From NCBI GenBank assembly GCA_965649825.1, contig OZ287696.1:2109724-2173723 (forward strand): DNA of 64,000 bases, given 5' to 3'. Made by a program: the position numbers and the translations under genes. Positions 21,644 through 62,691 of the stretch are shown piece after piece (position 1 is the stretch's first letter; the number at the start of each line of letters is the position of its first letter). Source of the DNA: Penicillus capitatus (taxonomy: Eukaryota > Plantae > Chlorophyta). The notes under the pieces are model-generated. The model had not been told where the DNA came from. It searched no databases and saw only the letters and a list, made by a program, of their open reading frames with translations.

Positions 21644-21712
21644 GCCCTCGTGGTGTAGTGGTTGGCATACTTGATCTTCCAAGAGGCATGGGTTCGAATC
21701 CCACCGAGGCGC
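21644..21712 (+). tRNA. tRNA-derived relic (pseudo-tRNA or SINE head), isotype unresolved
   Basis: A-box TGGTGTAGTGG and B-box GGTTCGAATCC; acceptor stem GCCCTCG/CGAGGCG is partly paired. The anticodon arm and variable region are shortened (~68 nt in total). Confidence 0.5.
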
Positions 21713-53428: not shown

Positions 53429-54001
53429 TCTATCTGTCGTCTTGAAGGGATATGGTCATTGTTCGTCAATGAAGAAGAATAAGAAGAAGAAAGATAGCAT
53501 AAGATATCCGTTTCAGTTTTTCACCGATACTTGTTGTCTGTTCTCAAGGCGAAAGCCTTTTCCTGACCCCGACTTTTCTCCTGCGTCCAAAACCTGATGG
53601 ACTCTAAACTTCATCGTATTTTTACCCTTTCTCTCAACATCGCCTCACATTTTCAACAGTTTCCCGCTTTTGTGTGTCGAACAACGTTCCAAGGAATTAT
53701 CACTTGTGTTTAGCACTCAACAAGAGCATCCCATGTGTACAGGATGTTGCGCTGGCAGGTAGTCGGGCACAGTGCATTCGTGCATTGCTGTTGACCAGAA
53801 ATTTAATGCATCTATCCCATTTGACTGATTCACTGGCCACTGTTCGCACAACGCAGCCAAGTCTGACGCATGACGAAAGGTATATTCCGCAGAGAGAACG
53901 GTGTCCAATAACGACGATACCCGGACAAGACAGATAGCACGCACGACCTGCTTCGAAGCTTCGGTATCTGTTTCCCACTCTATTCTGCACCGTCGCGTTT
54001 C

Positions 54002-55325
54002 ATGCCTCTTCGAATCTTTGGGCGGAGTTTACCGCCAACCATTCTCTCCTCTCTGGAAAATGCAAATGATTCTGAACAAACACTCGGAACTTCGAAGCTG
54101 GAAGTGTTTATCGGGACACGGCTCTTTCGCGAATGCGGTGGTCCGATAGGGAGACGGCTGCCAATTCAGTTCAAGGAATTTGCGAGAACCTGTGGTGCCT
54201 GTCACTACCTTGTCCTCTTTCGATCTCCAAATGGATCTATGGTGCGGTTCGATTTTGGGCCGACTGGAGGAGATGTCTATGGCAATCCCTTCGGCATCCG
54301 ACTCCCCCGTCTGGGTTCGAAGACCAACGCCAACTGTGTACCTGGAGAAATAAGAGAAACACAGGTGCCGTGCAAACACACCTCTGCCACAGTCATCTCA
54401 TCTATCGAGTGATCTATGTGCAGGTGACAGAACTGCCGGCGGATTATGTATACGTGGGCACCACAGATCTGCAACTGGAAGATATTCACCGATTCAATTC
54501 GGAACAGTCCGTCGACTATGAGCTTCACAAGAACGACTGCAGGTATCTTTGCCAGAAATACACATCCATGGATGCTGATGGTGGCCACTGTGTTCCGCAA
54601 CCAGACACTACGTCAACAAGTTAACAGAGTATGCGACTGGGATCGAGAGTATTGCTTCTTACTGTGTGCGCACCCGTTTCAATCTCGTCAAGGACGAGAC
54701 TCCCCTCTGGAGCCTGTGCATGATCCGAATGTTCCAAGTCGTGTCCGATGTCCGTCAGTGGCAACGCGTCAAGGCAGCAGGCAATGCAACAGCTGCTGTT
54801 GTCCTGGCACTTGTCGGACCCTCATTTGCTCGTCGCGTCAACGCTGTTGTCCATTGTGCCATACGACACTCGATCGCTGTCCAAGTGCCACCAGAGAAGA
54901 TGGTTGCGCGTCCAGCGCGCCGTGCAGCAGTGGCAGCCGTGGCTACTGTGGCAGCAACCTGGGAAGAGCGACCCATTCTCAAGAGCATCATCGATATCGG
55001 TGGTAGTTTCAATGAGCGCACGAGATCGTTTTTCATGGCGGCTGGCTCTATCTTCTCTTCCGTTCGTCGTAATGTTGTTCCTTTCCGAATCGGTCCAGCC
55101 CGCATCATTGCGGCAAGATCTGCTGCACAGCCGTTCCCTTTCTACGGAATGGCCGTTGTGCGTCGGATGTCAGGAAGATCTCTTTCTTTTCTGTCGACAT
55201 CATTATTTCGCCCATTCGTTTCTCTCCAACTTGATCACAGAAGTATCCAGTATCCTTCTGGCCCTCGACGACCTCTTGGATCTAAAGGGCGTCGCCATCA
55301 ACTGTCTGTTCCTATGTCCATTTAA
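54002..55325 (+). CDS. Uncharacterised protein, possibly PPPDE/permuted NlpC-P60-like
   Basis: CHYLVLF...FDFGP.GGD and YELHKNDCR motifs (H...NDC arrangement), with short GT-AG introns. Family assignment is tentative. Confidence 0.45.
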
Positions 55326-55870
55326 ATGGCTGTGACTTTTATATGTTATGTTCTGACTAAGGACACGGGTGTGTCTGTTGTCTTCCTGCCCAATTTCCAA
55401 GAAAGCAACACTAAGAGTCCCATCAATTCCTTTAAATTCACTCTTGCAGTGCCAAACACAAAAAGAGATTACGCGTTTTCGGTGGTGGTGGGTGTGGTGG
55501 TGGTCATTCTTGCATGGATTGGTATTCTTGTATTTGTTGACGCATTCCCATACTGTTGTTGTATGGACACAGTTATTGCTGTCGTCTGTCCAAAAGCTGC
55601 CCATTCGCAAATTGAAACTCATTTTCATCTACAGGTCCACGTGTCCAATGTTAACGTCACAAATGTTCCCAATACACTTGAATAATTGCCACGTGTTTTA
55701 TCATCTTGTACAGTAAGTCGTCCATTCAATCCATGATCGAACATGAGACCAACATGTCTCCGACCACTGATTGTTGATACCTCAAAAAGACCTGTTCCGA
55801 AAATCTTCAAGTACTGTAAGAGGATATCTGGAAAAGAAGTGGATAAGGAAGTGGTTGGCTGTTAAACCGT

Positions 55871-57306
55871 CTACTCCAGATTGGTAGACTTCAAGAGCAT
55901 GTCCGCTTCCGAAATGCCCAGTTCGTGCTGAACCAACAGACAGACCGTCTCAAATAGCATCCAAAGGGCAGACTCGTAGGCAGAACCGAGTGGTAGAAAA
56001 CGATCCATCGAAAGCAATGGGTCTCCACTCTGTTGCTGTGGATGAAGTTTGACTGGCTGCGTCGCGGATGCTGGCACTGGTGGGGCAGGGATGCGGATCA
56101 CACTCTCTGCAAAGGGTACAGGAGCTGTCCGATGTGACGTCAGCACCAGGACATGTGCCTTGGCACGAATACCAGCTAAACAGATGGCATTCACCTGCAG
56201 AGACAATGCATGAATGCTGCCTGTGGACTCGCACAAAGCACTAGAACATTACTGTGTTGAAGAAGCTCGGACCGGCGCTTGCCAGCAGAAGATCCCGAGG
56301 TCCAATGATCGGCATGGAAGTTTCGCCAATGAGATGAGCATCCAGTCCTAATTGCTTCAAGCGTATCACGAATGCTTGTAAAGCGCATCTCTCGCGTCCA
56401 ATTCCGTAGCAGCAGATCTTCTGACGACGAATCAATTCTGACGTCAAGAATCGCACGTCCGTAGACGATGTCTGCAACAAGGCATTGGAGACCTCTGCCA
56501 ATGCCATCTTCATGATGCGCCGAACGTCATCCACCACCTACACAACGGACGATATCTGTTGCGTGTGTGTCCATCATCGATGAGTGACCTGTCGAGGAGG
56601 CTGATCCGCCTGTCGCTTCACTCTCTTCGGCGCAAATAGATGATAGTTTGCTGTCAGTCCATGCATGGCGGCCTCCGTGGACAGCATTGTGATTTCGGCG
56701 CTCGACGGCACCTGCGTAAGCATAGTGGCCGTGGACGTCGCTTGTCCACTCGATGCTGAGCGTTTTGTGCGTGCGAGTCTGTTTTTGAGCCAGACACAGA
56801 CCTGCGTCTCCGTCGCTTCGCCTGCACTCCGCACAGCTGCGAATAACTCAGGCGACGCCTTGGAGAAACCTGCAGATGCGACCTGAGACAAACCTGTGGG
56901 TGAAATGCTGCGCACCTGCGTTGAAATGTCTCTCGAGTAGCGTCAGCTGTTGACTATTCGGTCTCCACCTCTGTCTAGGCACCGACGGACAGCTCACTGG
57001 TATTCCAGGCGCCGGATCAAGCTTCGGTTCTGGGTACATGTGTGGCGCAACGTACACGTGAACCTGTCCCGTCGTGAAATCGTGAAAGATGCGCCCCGGC
57101 AGTTCTCTTCGCAACGGCAGCTCCTCAAACGTCGTGAATGGCGGCAGATCTTTTTCTCCTTCCGTTTCTCCACTCGATACCAACAGACTCAACGTATCGT
57201 CTATGACATGGCCTGTCTCGCCGTCCGGGTGCGTTACGCTGTCTCCTCTGCTGAGAGAAGGCGGCGAATCCGGGGCGTCGTGTTCGTCGTCCATCTGTTC
57301 AGACAT
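55871..57306 (-). CDS. Predicted homeodomain (WOX-like) - SIS (PHI/HxlB-like) fusion protein, 426 aa, 4 exons
   Basis: Exons 57306-56916, 56869-56589, 56537-56253 and 56194-55871 are joined by 46-, 51- and 58-nt GT-AG introns, all in frame. Homeodomain PRQRWRPNSQQLTLLERHFNAG...TETQVCVWLKNRLARTKR; SIS domain ICCYGIGRE...LLLASAGPS...PLGSAYE...STNLE*. Confidence 0.75.
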
Positions 57307-57542
57307 GGCGAGGAAAAGACCGCGGCGTTTGGCGCCAAAGACGTCTGCTGCGTTGTACCCCTTAGTCGTCGCCGTTATCCGATTAATCTCGGTTACGTGA
57401 AGCTAACAAGGCGTTCGAGCGTACTTATACTTGAGGCGGTTTTCATCTTATATCCTTCTGATCCGACATTAATCCGAACGAACGAACAAACGAACGCACA
57501 CACCAACCCGTGCTTGTCAAGCCGTTGTTATTTGCGAGCTGC

Positions 57543-60500
57543 ATGGCGTCAGTCGACTTCGCCTTCTTTTTGATCGTTGTGGGTCTTCTTGGAACAAGGC
57601 CGTCGGTAAAGGTCGGGGTGTCCCGTTTCGCGTTTTGCGAGTGGGGGATATGTGCATGATGGGGGTCCCTGTAGGTTGTTTGTGCTTGTCCGGAGAATGA
57701 AACGAGAAGCTGCGTACAGATTGGATCAACAGAGATACACTTTCAAAACAAACTTCAGTTGGAGAATCCAAAATGCAAAACATCTCAAACACCGCAAACG
57801 CTGAAAATGTACTGGAAGCTGCCTGATACCGAGAACGCTCCAACCCACTTTGTCCAGTGCTTTCTTTTTCCACTCGAAAGGGTCGAAATCATGGCAAGCT
57901 CATCCCAATCGATGGCCTTTTGGGGAATGTCCGATGCGGTAGATCAATCGAACAGATTTGACTTTCATAAGTTCATCCGAAGAAGCATTTAAGGGGGTGC
58001 GTGTGTTCCTGATCGAAGAGATCCTCACACGATCGTACAACATCGGCTGTATTTTTTAGGTCTTGCATTCGGCGGCCGTTTTGGCGAACTCCAAGAAGAT
58101 GTTGTGGAAATGCGATATGAGCATTCGTCATGGAATCTGGATTCCTTTTCTCGGCTATTCACTCTCAGATGCTGTTGCCGAGGGCGGTGGGCTATCCGTT
58201 GTTGAAGTCAGCTTCAGCTTTGGATGCTGCTTGATGTCTTTAGATGTTCGAACGTGGGTGTTCTCTGAAGTTGACAAGCGCACAAGAATTGTACGATCTC
58301 AAGTGCTCTCTGTCGAACCTTCTCTATTGGAAGCCTCTTCGACGAGGGACATCATCATTCATGTGCGTCAATTATCGGCAGATGAAGGTCTTTGTGTCGT
58401 CTAACGAGTGTGCCCTGTCAAGGGGCGATTTCTGCATTCTGCTGTCGCCTGTCAAGTCATCCCCAAGAGTCACGGGAGACCTTCTGGCCCAGTTGATGGA
58501 ATCCTGGTCAATTCTACTGTCGCATCATGCAACATACAAGTAACCGACAGCCGTGCCTGTGGAACAGTGTTGTTTGATTGATTGGATTGCAGGGAGAGGA
58601 AGGCAGAGCCACTCTGGTGGTTTCATGGGAAGGCGATTGTTCTGAAGAATTTGAAATAGAATTCTTAACCCGGCCCCGAGTTGTGCAGATCATTCCATCC
58701 ATCTTACCTGCATACGGAAGAAGCCCGCTGAAAGTTCATCTGAGTTCAGGACGACCGAATGCTGAGAATGAGATTGCCCTATTCCTGCCCGCGCAGGTAT
58801 CTACTACAGTTGTAGGCACTGACGAATTTAATAACTTCGACAGGCCGCCCCAGCAATTCGGCTAGACTGCTTGCCGAATCGCACCTTTGACGGAAGCTTC
58901 AGTATCTTGTCTGATAAGGACTGGGAGGCGTCGTTCTCCATCAGAGGGCTGTCCTCGGCTCTTGACAACAGCCACTGCAACGTGTCTTTGTCGCTCAACG
59001 GCAAACATTTCTTCTCAGCAAACCATGTCCACTTCATCCGTCGCAGCATCTGGTCCACTTTTGTCCTGGTGTTTAGAGCGTTCAAGTGAAAGGACCCTTT
59101 GTCAGATTTCTTTCTATGAAGCACGGTGTGGCAGTCGATGGAGAGACACAGTTAATGGTGGAACTCGATAACCCAGTCTCCGTTGAGGTTGCCGTTTCAC
59201 TCAAGATCACTGCTCGCAATAATGATTCGGAGAATGTGATTTTGCGGGAACCGACGGTCACTTGGAAGGCAGGGGAGACGGGCATCAAGCATTTCACGGT
59301 GCTTCACAAGGGCAGACATCAAAACAGAAGGAAGCCTATGCAATTTGTCGGAATGCTCCACAATGCCGTGCATTGTTCCATTGATCATCGACATGAAAAC
59401 ATGACACTCGTTGTCATTGAGAACGAAGAGTTTCCTGTCTTTCGCAGTCCATTGCTTCAGGTTCCCACCATATACTGCACATTCTGATGGTTTATCGTTT
59501 TTTCATTTGATCAGGTGCTATACCCACCATCATCTGAAACAATTGCAGTCAATGTCACTCTTGCACAAGGATCTGATCGACTGAAATCTGTCATAGCATA
59601 CAGAACGTACCTGCATCAACGAAACGCAGGTGAGAGGCTAAACGATTGATCCATGCTAATTGAGCTGCTGTATGGACTGAAGGATGCAATGAACAGAACA
59701 GAGCAGACTTGATTCCAGAAATGACAGGCCGCCTTTATTGGAAGCGGGGAGATGTTCAGAGAACTATTGTGCTGCCTGTGCACTGGGATAACATTGACTA
59801 CTGCGATGCCATCGAAGTGCATTTGGTACTCAAAGGCATCGAAATGGCATCCGTGGAAAGGGAGGATTCCATCGTGGCCGTCATTTACGGCACTCCAGAA
59901 GGATTCTGCAATCCAGGTCTTCCCAATCGGCAATCATTTTCCACCAACTGTCCTATCCAAAGGGACGGTACTCGAGAAACGTCGTCGAAGAGAACTGCCA
60001 TTCGAATTGAACAGAGCAGAGGATATCTCGTTGGACGATGTGAAGATCGAAGGTGACAACCGTGTCCAATGAACAGAATACTCGATCGTCCTCTTCTCCA
60101 GGGCACGATTCTGACAGTGGAGAGCTCATGGAAACAGCACTGGTCCCACCGTTTCTCGTCAATCGACTGAACTACACAGCTATGATTCCCTACGAATTTG
60201 TTTCGACAAAGATGTTGCTCTGGAACAAAGGCGTCTCGACAGTAGAATCGAAAGAGTGATTCTTTAAAATGATAGGTTGATATAGGACATCCGTATCAAT
60301 GATCTGTCGTGTTCCATCGAAGAAGAGCTTCGGTGGAGAAAGAGCGTTGGAGCTACAAGACCTGCGCTTCAGGCAAAGGTTCTGTTTGGAGACGACATGC
60401 AACACTGCGCTCTGCAGGTGCATCATTTGTCGCCTAAGAACAACACCGGATGTACACGTGTCCTTCTGCAGATCATGAGTTTGGACTTTCGAGAGAGAAC

Positions 60501-62691
60501 AGGGATGCAGGACAACTTCGATGAGATCAGTCTAGAAGATGAAGACTTGGAAGATGTGACAGCACTTTCCTCCCAAATGGCTCCGCCGTTTGAAATGGAA
60601 CGGTATACGACGACTTTTCACGTGGATATCTTGAAGCTTAGTGACCCGAATGCTGCTCGTCTGCTGTCCGTCGAAGCTCGAAACGCAACACATGTGATTG
60701 TGCTCTGTGGACCACCAGAGCCATCTCAACACAACCGAGTGCGTGCGTTCAGCTGCATAGGTTTCTTGAACAATGTCCTTTCTGCAGGACTCAGGCAGTA
60801 AAACGGCATTTGTGAGGATTGAAGGCTACCCAAAAAGACACTGTCGTGCCGAAAGAATCAATTACATTCGTGAAACCTTGATTGGAGATAGACTGTTGAT
60901 CATACCGAGACGGCTACAGCCTGAAACGCCCTCAACCAGAATCGAAGTCTCAGGTCAATTCCTCGAAGACATCCACCATGATTATCAAGACACCCCGCTG
61001 TTGAACAAACGCAAAGACCTCTGCCTGCGTTACAGTGGTCTCTGGTCTTAGGGATCAAGATACTGGTGGAGAGAAGATCATGGCTAAGGCGTTTGAGGGA
61101 GTATACCTAACCAATGCGTCGTTGAGTTTTGATGTCCGCGTCACAGCCGAAGACAACGTCACATCAAATCTCTATCGTTTTGTCTTTGGTCCATCAGGAA
61201 GTCCCTATGAACTCACTGCTGCTGGAAGCTCATTTGACATGCAACAGAATCCTCAGGAGGATGAGAGAGCAAACCAGAGCAGGTCTGAAGGACAGATGTC
61301 TCATCAAAGGACATCAAAGAATCATTGGTGTGAGGAGTGTCCTTCTGGAACGTTCTCCATTGGCGTCGACGCACTACAGTGTGCCTTGTGTCGACCAGGA
61401 CGCTATGCCAGTCAGCCTGGCAGTTTTCGGTGCAATGAATGTCCCGAGGGCACATTTACATACACTTGGGGATCCGACAGCTGCAGGTACCGTCTTAAAG
61501 ACAATACGTCTTTGCTGGTATTCATGGCGCAGCACTGGTCGTTTTGGAATTGATAGTCTTCTGATGTCGTTGTCCCAAGAGCTGTTCTTTTGGTGTTTCT
61601 CTCTCAGAATTCCGCAAACCTTCATCCAATGAGATGACTGACAATCGTTACCTCTGCGTTTAGGCCCTGTATGTTTGGCAGTGCAACAAACAGACGAGGA
61701 TCACAGTACTGCCACTTGTGTCCTGAAGGATATATGACAGAAAGAGATGGATCTGCTCACTGTACTGTTCTCATCGAGTCAACAGATCTACGAAGGCACT
61801 ATGCAGTCATCGCCTCTTTTGATGTACTGCTCGACGGGACATCTCTAGAAGAGATTGAGGATCTCGGAACATGTATACCTATCAAAGATCGCTATGGCAT
61901 ACCATACCATCTGTGTTTGTAGCGGTACACGCATCAGGCCTCGTCGTTTTGAAGATGCTGGTCCGAACAGATGTGGCAGAAGCGTTGAACATATCTGTCG
62001 GTGATGTGACAATCAGGGATGTCCTGCCTGTTGGCTATCATGCCTTGTCGATTGATGTGGACACCACTTTCAAAGTGGAGGTGTCAAACGATGCCGAACC
62101 TGAAGAGGTGCATCGTAAACTGGAATACACGCTGTTACATGGCGACGATGCCGTCAGCCAATTGGCTAATGAACCTGATCGTGTCTTCAATCGAACAACG
62201 AGGGCCACCCATACCAAAGCCAAGGTGAGCAACAGCACTGCACTCTGTAAATATCTCTGCCGTTTTTGCGTTAAGATCGCCAAAGACAGCAAGAAACTGA
62301 GGGAATCTCGTCCCAATGATGTTGGGAATGCGGAGACGGAATTCATGTCTCCCATTATTGGCATCTGTTGCCTCATCATCATCGTCTGTTCCTTTTTTGC
62401 TTATGCGAGAATTCGAAAAAACAGGGCGCGGACTAAACATTCCAAATCCTTAACCTGGTATGCATTCTGTATGATACATATATGCGGGGGCGATGGCACC
62501 ATCCTCTTTTATTCCAGGACTGTCTTGGGAGAATCTTCGGAGAGCAGCAGTGGACGCGAAATGGAAGAAAGGACACCTCCAATAAGATCCGTACGGTAAG
62601 GTTCTTTCCTCTTGATCTCCACAGTAACGTCTCTCCATACAACAGCTTCAGGCCCCGAGGGCTGACGACTCCAACCAGCTGGAATCCGTAA
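57543..62691 (+). CDS. Large single-pass cell-surface protein (signal peptide, IPT/TIG-like, Calx-beta-like, cadherin-like, Cys-rich GCC/ephrin-like repeats, TM)
   Basis: Signal peptide MASVDFAFFLIVVGLLG; VVQIIPSILPAYG; VTWKAGETGIKHFTV and LYWKRGDVQRTIVLPV; VRVTAEDNVTSNLY; CEECPSGTF...CRPGRY...CPEGTF...CPEGY; TM segment IIGICCLIIIVCSFFAYARI. Confidence 0.75.

Follow-up and report, generated by a model that had tools for sequence, protein, structure and literature searches.

Genomic organization of the locus

We analysed a 64,000-nt window of the Penicillus capitatus genome (contig OZ287696.1, forward-strand positions 2,109,724 to 2,173,723; all positions below are those of the window), in which one gene, read on the minus strand, encodes a homeodomain and a sugar isomerase (SIS) domain in the same polypeptide. 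An earlier gene model, given in a preliminary description made from the sequence alone, was reproduced at every coordinate when we read the minus strand of 55400-57900 and spliced it with a script: the introns of 46, 51 and 58 nt, the frame of 426 amino acids, and the TGA and ATG AAG ATG triplets near the second intron were all recovered. The spliced coding sequence has 1281 nt and encodes 426 residues, and its three introns are all of the GT..AG type. The protein consists of a short N-terminal region, a WOX-like homeodomain, a disordered linker of ~55 residues and a complete SIS domain with an ...NLE C-terminus. One nuclear gene of the expressed type, that of a bryopsidalean-like green alga, occupies the stretch from 57306 to 55871, and its features are as follows.

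57306, minus strand: start codon ATG, read from the sequence; the ATG and its 5' flank are kept in contig L002 of a close relative, and the related protein P0001 begins at the equivalent methionine
56916 to 57306, minus strand: exon 1, coding for residues 1-109 (the N-terminal region) and for the homeodomain's first third, as far as ...RHFNA and the first part of the following G codon
56870 to 56915, minus strand: intron 1, 46 nt, GTGCGC..CTGCAG, phase 1, inside the homeodomain
56589 to 56869, minus strand: exon 2, coding for the remaining homeodomain (helices 2-3, ...VWLKNRLARTKR) and the linker up to ...KRVKRQADQPPRQ
56538 to 56588, minus strand: intron 2, 51 nt, with CAG before the donor GTCACT and the acceptor TGTAG before GTG, phase 0, at the boundary of the linker and the SIS domain
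56253 to 56537, minus strand: exon 3, coding for the first half of the SIS domain (residues 225-319), with GIGRE at 56405-56391 and SAGPS at 56279-56265
56195 to 56252, minus strand: intron 3, 58 nt, GTAATG..CTGCAG, phase 0
55871 to 56194, minus strand: exon 4, coding for the second half of the SIS domain (residues 320-426), ending in ...KSTNLE
55871 to 55873, minus strand: stop codon TAG, read from the sequence
56754 to 56979, minus strand: homeodomain coding region (residues 110-169), split by intron 1; assigned from PF00046, PDB matches and AlphaFold2
56589 to 56753, minus strand: linker, predicted to be disordered (residues 170-224); assigned from low model confidence and a raised dN/dS
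55874 to 56537, minus strand: coding region of the SIS domain, 6-phospho-3-hexuloisomerase-like (residues 225-426), split by intron 3; assigned from TIGR03127, PDB and Foldseek

Evidence for a single homeodomain-SIS gene

The same arrangement could in principle be produced by two adjacent genes, a homeodomain gene ending at the TGA at 56574 and a SIS gene starting at the ATG at 56513, with the GT and AG between them present by chance. The length of intron 2 is a multiple of three and an in-frame TGA lies within it (56576-56574), while the ATG AAG ATG at 56513 is situated 24 nt inside exon 3, all of which would suit two genes. It also counts against the fusion that our transcript-type evidence stems from relatives and not from the alga that supplied the window. 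However, two genes would be left with just ~60 nt between them, and the comparisons with related sequences speak for one gene at each step.

In a 100-kb metagenomic contig of a close relative (L002), the whole gene could be aligned at 88% nucleotide identity. The exons were 88.6-92.6% identical with zero indels, and their mismatches were distributed over codon positions 1, 2 and 3 as 28, 13 and 82, whereas introns 1, 2 and 3 were 76%, 47% and 74% identical. The indels in intron 3 sum to 4 nt, which is no multiple of three. Intron 2 kept its GT, its AG and its length of 51 nt in L002, and the rest of it was unalignable. In contrast, the 24 nt between the acceptor of intron 2 and the ATG at 56513, which in the case of two genes would lie upstream of the second one, were near-identical. 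The ratio of nonsynonymous to synonymous substitutions (dN/dS, Nei-Gojobori method) between the window and L002 was 0.14 for the whole protein, 0.117 for the homeodomain, 0.33 for the linker and 0.086 for the SIS domain, a pattern that indicates purifying selection on both domains. We also considered that the gene might be a pseudogene, and this was ruled out by the dN/dS values.

A second contig, L001 (2.2 kb), encodes a protein 60% identical to that of the window as one uninterrupted open reading frame (ORF) of 391 amino acids, without any of the three introns. With the spliced window protein as the query, the match to this 391-residue protein covered 97% of the length at E=8.5e-142, and as a sequence match to the fusion it is far beyond chance. 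The blocks of the nucleotide alignment between the window and L001 skip introns 1 and 3 exactly, and the second junction is crossed by the protein alignment, where ...PPRQ joined to VVDDVRRI... in the window is matched by ...PPQ joined to IVDEIRKV... in P0001/L001. We considered L001 as a cDNA, and this remained unconfirmed: its 3' end carries a convergent neighbour gene and it may be intronless genomic DNA. The ORF is uninterrupted regardless of its nature.

The alga Ostreobium provided a further line of comparison. According to the NCBI gene model of the Ostreobium quekettii orthologue P0006, which belongs to the same clade as the window gene (clade A, see below), introns are located between HFNS and G, between EEGADE and ESWDDY, and between YYNTV and NAICL, so that introns 1 and 3 match the window exactly and intron 2 lies within one codon. 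The counterpart of intron 2 is 102 nt long and of the GT..AG type, and there is one extra intron after the homeodomain. The Ostreobium paralogue P0012 of clade B has introns 1 and 3 in common with the window, the first of them falling between HFN(S/A) and G across the clades. Moreover, two JGI contigs (L004 and L005) contain an uninterrupted homeodomain-SIS ORF of 542 amino acids, and L004 aligned with the genomic locus of P0012 in four blocks that skip its introns of 317, 470 and 681 nt. Judged from these alignments, L004 and L005 are most simply explained as spliced transcripts of an Ostreobium relative.

The uninterrupted two-domain ORFs of L001, L004 and L005, the conserved intron positions, and the homologous residues that lie upstream of the ATG in all relatives (VVDDVRRI in the window, IVDEIRKV or SWDDYxKM elsewhere) already contradict the reading as two genes, which on these sequences is very improbable and which we reject. 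We regard it as nearly certain that the homeodomain-SIS fusion gene is real. The proposal of the preliminary description that one gene joins both domains across a genuine 51-nt intron is therefore upheld by what relatives show in sequence comparison, in the positions of their introns and in transcript-type contigs.

We also noticed that the intron between linker and SIS domain is a multiple of three with in-frame stops in all three genomes compared (51 nt in the window, 51 nt in L002 and 102 nt at L006 2451-2552). Because of this length and these stops, an unspliced mRNA would encode a homeodomain-only protein. Such a product could be a regulated isoform, or its recurrence in the sequences could be a coincidence, as two of the three genomes are close relatives.

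The homeodomain, the linker and the N-terminal region

The Pfam scan of the 426-residue protein (E<=1) gave the homeodomain model PF00046 as its sole match, with no hit to HTH_6 (PF01418) or START. The match covers residues 111-167 (E=3e-4), and its 21 bits fall slightly short of the gathering score of 22.9 bits; all ten family members tested gave a match to the same model, the best with E=2.3e-6. In the AlphaFold2 model the region forms three helices (model residues 12-23, 31-40 and 45-64) with a predicted local distance difference test score (pLDDT) of 87-94. Residues invariant in the family, numbered from the Pfam alignment, include R5, W48, K50, N51 and R55, which are DNA-contact positions.

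When the family homeodomain profile was compared with the PDB, the first matches were STENOFOLIA (6wig, E=2.2e-6) and WUSCHEL (6ry3, E=4.5e-6), followed by engrailed and bicoid. The alignment to WOX proteins, whose homeodomain is extended to 65-66 amino acids, requires gaps of 4-5 residues, and helix 3 reads VWLKNRLAR in place of YWFQN(H/R)KAR; for these reasons we call the homeodomain WOX-like only. A word-indexed profile search with the homeodomain alone returned five short fragments and no named non-fused relatives, so that the PDB matches are the sole basis of the WOX assignment. On this sequence evidence the homeodomain is WOX-like and not a demonstrated member of the WOX family.

The linker had a pLDDT of ~29-39 through most of its length. 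It contains a conserved basic patch, KRVKR (56627-56613), which may be a nuclear localisation signal, and K215 in the linker is invariant across the family. Further upstream, TGQVHVYV (residues 79-86) is conserved in clade A, and Bryopsis and Ostreobium have TG(Q/H)VH(V/L)(L/V)VQDL. The TLSLLV sequence at residues 38-43 bears merely a loose resemblance to a WUS box, and a similarly loose one to EAR-type motifs; the N-terminal motif stretches lie at 57049-57075 and 57178-57198 on the minus strand.

The SIS domain

The C-terminal part of the protein (residues 234-426) matched the NCBIfam model RuMP_HxlB, TIGR03127, over model positions 2-178 of 178, with E=2.4e-20 and 73.2 bits. This score does not reach the equivalog cutoff of the model, which is 160 bits; a canonical member scored 238 bits, and bacterial proteins of the GVGRE type described below scored 143-160 bits. 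Sequence matches in the PDB were YckF/HxlB (1m3s, 1viv), the bifunctional fusion of hexulose-phosphate synthase and 6-phospho-3-hexuloisomerase (HPS-PHI, 9lj9), MJ1247 (1jeo) and AF1796 (1vim). Foldseek with the predicted model placed 1viv, 1m3s, 1vim and 1jeo first (E ~1e-12, target TM-score ~0.8), and the next matches were the effector-bound SIS domains of the RpiR-family regulators MurR, NanR and RccR (~1e-8).

The motifs that in canonical proteins read GxGRSG, SGSGET and H(A)NLE are GIGRER, SAGPSFF and STNLE in the window protein. Canonical SIS domains hold phosphate through the serine and threonine hydroxyl residues of these motifs. Our literature look-up on the catalytic residues of hexuloisomerases gave no usable source, and statements on the active site therefore rest on column conservation and on established properties of SIS domains. 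Across 42 non-fused relatives, 19 near-universal columns reach a conservation of 90% or more. Fourteen of these are unchanged in the window protein (G269, G271, R272, R283, L284, G288, D306, G313, A332, T338, G389, E393, N424 and E426), and five are altered (L to C275, M to I282, H to Q286, G to S315 and H to S422). The two lost histidines are invariant in 41 and 42 of the 42 non-fused relatives; both are also lost in P0001 and in the Caulerpa protein g1823, whereas the majority of the remaining fused proteins retain them. The C-terminus of the window protein coincides exactly with the ...NLE end found throughout the family, and the fused forms have signatures of their own, SAGPS followed by Y/F and Y/F, and FTAHxTAPLPFA.

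A subfamily of stand-alone SIS proteins

Profile searching exposed a large subfamily of stand-alone SIS proteins of ~185 amino acids, with the motifs G(V/C)GRE(G)L, (V)SAGPG, LPMGSxYE and RHTNLE. Its members were found in land plants (Papaver KAI3899431, Drosera GAB2255745), green algae and many bacteria, and the sequence comparison indicates that the fused SIS domains descend from this GVGRE/SAGPG/RHTNLE subfamily. The Papaver and Drosera proteins agree with the earlier statement that plants carry stand-alone relatives of the domain. The stand-alone plant member probably corresponds to the AT5G52190 family. In the literature AT5G52190 occurred only where genes reported to be of bacterial origin are listed, with the annotation 'sugar binding' and no known function (PMC3493653, PMC11131428). 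Our search found no publication on the function of the GVGRE subfamily, and no activity is known for any member.

The bacterial members were inspected in five distinct neighbourhoods (contigs L008-L015). A gene for hexulose-phosphate synthase (OMPdecase/HPS), the partner of the isomerase in the RuMP pathway, was absent near the GVGRE SIS gene in all five; for the algal gene itself such a partnership does not come into question. One type of cluster contained a SorC-type sugar-binding regulator, a sugar ATP-binding cassette (ABC) transporter and a zinc-dependent alcohol dehydrogenase (Zn-ADH). Another comprised an ABC transporter, Fe-ADH_2, the SIS gene and a short-chain dehydrogenase/reductase (SDR), with a SorC-type regulator and a HAD phosphatase in addition in one of the two examples. 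A third combined an ABC transporter with three xylose-isomerase-like TIM-barrel proteins. In the fourth, the SIS gene overlaps a ribulose-phosphate-3-epimerase-like gene and is accompanied by genes for an FGGY kinase, a dihydroxyacetone kinase and a DeoC aldolase. From these neighbourhoods we conclude that the GVGRE subfamily belongs to carbohydrate catabolism. The bacterial GVGRE proteins are labelled 6-phospho-3-hexuloisomerase by IMG and NCBI; judged from sequence and gene context, this label is probably an over-annotation of the subfamily.

Distribution and phylogeny of the fused family

An initial search for homologues gave 14 proteins, of which almost every one had both domains, from Bryopsis sp. 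KO-2023, Ostreobium (three), EukProt (two models) and contigs of metagenomes and run assemblies. In an exhaustive profile search of 1.84 billion representatives, approximately nine clusters at 50% identity covered the full profile from the homeodomain to the C-terminus. Caulerpa lentillifera has three paralogues (g1823, g5967 and g474), Ostreobium at least three, including scf_340.7, and Bryopsis two (BSKO_00197 and BSKO_13711). Predicted members were also found in Trebouxiophyceae, namely [Myrmecia] bisecta KAK9809893.1 and Trebouxia sp. C0006 KAL0052458.1, and one MMETSP transcript, whose ORF starts within the homeodomain, belongs to the family. UniRef lists the Myrmecia protein as 'Homeobox domain-containing protein', with a precomputed hit to the Pfam SIS model PF01380, which that protein matches; the architecture is therefore already visible in databases, unannotated as such.

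The window protein aligned from the homeodomain to the C-terminus with the Caulerpa, Bryopsis, Ostreobium and metagenomic members and has, in one polypeptide, the family features: the RW(K/R)PN...VWLKNRLAR homeodomain, a linker containing KR, and an SIS domain with CCYGVGRE, SAGPS and a terminal NLE. In a bootstrapped tree of the SIS region, built by neighbour-joining only, the fused SIS domains grouped together, although only weakly as a whole (bootstrap 35); the Bryopsidales-type group had a bootstrap of 96, and clade A one of 100. Clade A consists of the window gene, P0001, Caulerpa g1823, Bryopsis and two Ostreobium sequences. The window gene is a clade-A orthologue, nearest to metagenomic sequences and then to Caulerpa. 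The nearest neighbours of the fused domains in the tree were the stand-alone green-algal SIS proteins of Ostreobium (scf_1623.3) and Acetabularia (P012186).

The Myrmecia gene has ~8 exons with boundaries unlike those of Bryopsidales. Since the positions differ, the intron evidence for common ancestry is limited to Bryopsidales, and a single origin across the classes rests on the homeodomain signature, which is near-identical between them (RWKPN...VWLKNRLAR(S/A)KR), and the shared architecture. Taken together, the sequences indicate a conserved multi-copy family in Bryopsidales that is also present in Trebouxiophyceae. The suggestion that the arrangement may have arisen in this alga did not hold, given the paralogues in Caulerpa, Ostreobium and Bryopsis and the trebouxiophycean members.

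The homeodomain-SIS gene of Myrmecia takes up 7.8 kb for 371 amino acids. At its locus (L007 7401-8516) the last intron holds approximately eight partial tandem copies, in differing frames, of the exon segment encoding GAKVVAFTAHLTAALPMADTVVRVPSQTM.

Possible function of the fusion

Its sequence features make it likely that the protein is a DNA-binding nuclear factor. By analogy with the bacterial RpiR/MurR/HexR regulators and with what is proposed for the HD-START factors of plants, the model that we put forward is that the homeodomain would bind DNA in the nucleus, the SIS domain would bring two or four homeodomains together, and a carbohydrate-type small molecule would bind to the SIS domain, its occupancy altering DNA binding or the recruitment of cofactors; we would give this model an even chance. 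The enzymes ancestral to the SIS domain have been solved as oligomers. The ligand need not be a phosphosugar: the sugar-uptake and dehydrogenase contexts of the bacterial relatives make a carbohydrate-type ligand reasonable for the algal domain, while a phosphosugar specifically is not established by them. To the SIS domain being a ligand-responsive module we would give a chance that is even or somewhat lower. Owing to the loss of the two histidines under strong purifying selection, binding is favoured over catalysis in the lineage of the window gene.

Several observations weigh against such a role. The Pfam SIS model PF01380 found no match in the window protein at E<=1. In the alignment, the serine of GxGRS is replaced by glutamate and the Ser/Ser/Thr of SGSGET by Ala/Pro/Phe-Tyr, and the changes of H to Q286 and H to S422 could mean that the pocket is degenerating. 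In the homeodomain, R53 is replaced by leucine. Structure prediction, recommended in the preliminary description, returned the SIS fold and a three-helix homeodomain but no confident relative orientation of the two domains (predicted TM-score, 0.53). The same description had proposed an RpiR-like regulator that senses phosphosugars. An RpiR-like sensor role is plausible by analogy, though unproven; the phosphosugar part of the proposal is an analogy and not a result, considering that the domain is not of the RpiR type, that the canonical phosphate-binding residues are replaced and that two histidines are lost.

The SIS domain could instead be a structural oligomerisation module only, like the leucine zipper of HD-Zip proteins, forming homeodomain dimers or tetramers with no regulation by a small molecule. 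The closest solved relatives are hexuloisomerases, which are oligomeric, and WOX homeodomains bind DNA as dimers; the replaced phosphate-binding residues and the two histidines missing from the window protein, P0001 and Caulerpa g1823 would also be in line with this reading. However, the pocket-lining GVGRE, SAGPS and LGSxxE and the terminal ...NLE show little or no variation even among fused proteins that have diverged widely, and the SIS dN/dS of 0.086 is the lowest in the protein, a stronger constraint than is usual where a domain serves as an interface only. We consider a purely structural role unlikely. It may also be asked whether the domain has remained active as an isomerase of sugars or sugar phosphates, so that the protein would be bifunctional, with the homeodomain tethering the enzyme to chromatin or the enzyme doubling as a regulator. 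The SIS domain is complete, its core being free of deletions, and most fused members (clade B, Bryopsis P0003, Ostreobium P0006 and Myrmecia P0018) keep all of the near-universal columns that the window protein has lost, including both histidines, along with the conserved glutamate. Yet in the window protein and the two relatives nearest to it, both histidines and the G of SAGPG are replaced despite strong purifying selection, so that selection is not acting on these residues. Moreover, the protein scores 73 bits against the hexuloisomerase cutoff of 160 bits, and the GVGRE subfamily is one with no known activity. Continued catalysis is quite improbable in our estimation.

A more elaborate form of the ligand-responsive model can be drawn, namely a eukaryotic 'one-component' regulator in which a carbohydrate metabolite at the subunit interface of an SIS dimer or tetramer would switch WOX-like homeodomains on or off DNA and so couple carbon status to transcription. 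The expansion to three or more paralogues in giant, single-celled siphonous algae would then serve to read the local metabolic state in a shared cytoplasm, and retention of intron 2 would yield a ligand-blind, homeodomain-only isoform. As a whole this picture is speculative and on the unlikely side.

Surroundings of the gene in the window

The neighbouring ORFs of the window showed no functional link to the homeodomain-SIS gene, and the sole Pfam hit among them was one protein with Ephrin_rec_like repeats. A convergent neighbour gene on the plus strand, at ~54000-55325, ends at 55325 (...GRRHQLSVPMSI and a stop codon), with no Pfam hit and an unusual amino-acid composition. Its last exon is 49.5% identical over 109 amino acids to L001 1742-2164 on the minus strand, and this match indicates that local synteny with the homeodomain-SIS gene is conserved. 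Between 49913 and 53425 (plus strand) there is one open frame of 1171 codons, of low complexity and rich in Ser, Lys, Pro and Thr, with no Pfam match. The cysteine-rich Ephrin_rec_like repeats (PF07699, E=8e-10) are encoded at 61005-61550 (plus strand) and a hydrophobic stretch resembling a membrane span at 61859-62596 (plus strand); a single surface protein is probably encoded by the two ORFs as exons. Among the gene calls of L002, too, Ephrin_rec_like gave a weak hit. Finally, Rfam reported a tRNA at 21644-21711 (plus strand; 31.8 bits against a gathering score of 29, E=0.01), whereas ARAGORN found no tRNA in the window.

Novelty and comparison with known systems

Our literature search on homeodomain or homeobox proteins, including WOX, in combination with SIS, sugar isomerase or phosphosugar found nothing relevant, and the Caulerpa genome paper, which is focused on homeobox genes, does not mention the architecture. 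The earlier remark that the architecture had not been described thus remains valid for papers, with the database entries being uncharacterised 'Homeobox domain-containing protein' records. Neither the building blocks nor the logic of regulation are new, but their combination, its occurrence in eukaryotes and its phyletic spread appear to be undescribed. Bacterial transcription factors routinely sense metabolites directly by means of a domain derived from an enzyme; among eukaryotes, apart from nuclear receptors and the still poorly understood HD-START proteins of plants, such sensing is rare. The present family is a compact, conserved, multi-copy chlorophyte system that offers a testable link from carbon metabolism to gene expression, and the work also draws attention to the large uncharacterised GVGRE branch in plants, algae and bacteria. 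Even if the SIS domain were only a dimeriser, the family would be a new class of algal homeodomain proteins, apparently overlooked by homeobox surveys.

Among eukaryotic proteins, WOX factors such as WUSCHEL and STENOFOLIA share with the window protein the RW-P N-terminal arm and the A54-R55 pair; the window protein differs in its shorter loops, in K50 and L53, in having no clear WUS box and in its C-terminal SIS domain. The HD-Zip III/IV (HD-START) proteins of plants are a eukaryotic precedent for joining a homeodomain to a small-molecule-binding domain. Unlike them, the window protein has neither START nor zipper, so the comparison is one of analogy only. Another analogy is the animal protein GKRP, reported to be a descendant of an SIS enzyme that lost catalysis and senses fructose phosphates (10.64898/2026.05.08.723886). 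Unlike the window protein, GKRP has no DNA-binding domain.

The subfamily motifs GVGREGL, SAGPG, LPMGSxYE and RHTNLE link the fused forms with the stand-alone SIS proteins that green algae and land plants possess; the stand-alone proteins have no homeodomain, and many carry N-terminal extensions. With HxlB/PHI (YckF 1m3s/1viv, MJ1247 1jeo and AF1796 1vim), the window protein shares homology from end to end, the fold, the G-x-G-R loop, the glutamate E393 and the terminal ...NLE. It departs from them by GRE in place of GRS, SAGPSFF in place of SGSGET and STNLE in place of H(A/T)NLE, by the fused homeodomain and by belonging to the separate GVGRE subfamily.

The bacterial RpiR, MurR and HexR proteins are regulators with a helix-turn-helix (HTH) and an SIS domain, the latter binding a sugar-derived effector. 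RpiR, MurR, HexR and NanR have an N-terminal DNA-binding domain and a C-terminal SIS domain, as the window protein does, and structures with the effectors N-acetylmuramic acid 6-phosphate (MurNAc-6P), N-acetylmannosamine 6-phosphate (ManNAc-6P) and 2-keto-3-deoxy-6-phosphogluconate (KDPG) were among our Foldseek matches. However, the DNA-binding domain of the window protein is a eukaryotic homeodomain and not HTH_6, and its SIS domain is of the hexuloisomerase type, as indicated by the Foldseek values (~1e-12 for PHI against ~1e-8 for RpiR-type domains) and by NCBIfam, where it matches HxlB models only. Its gene, moreover, is nuclear, with spliceosomal introns and a long disordered linker. The likeness to RpiR is a convergent architecture and not membership of that family.

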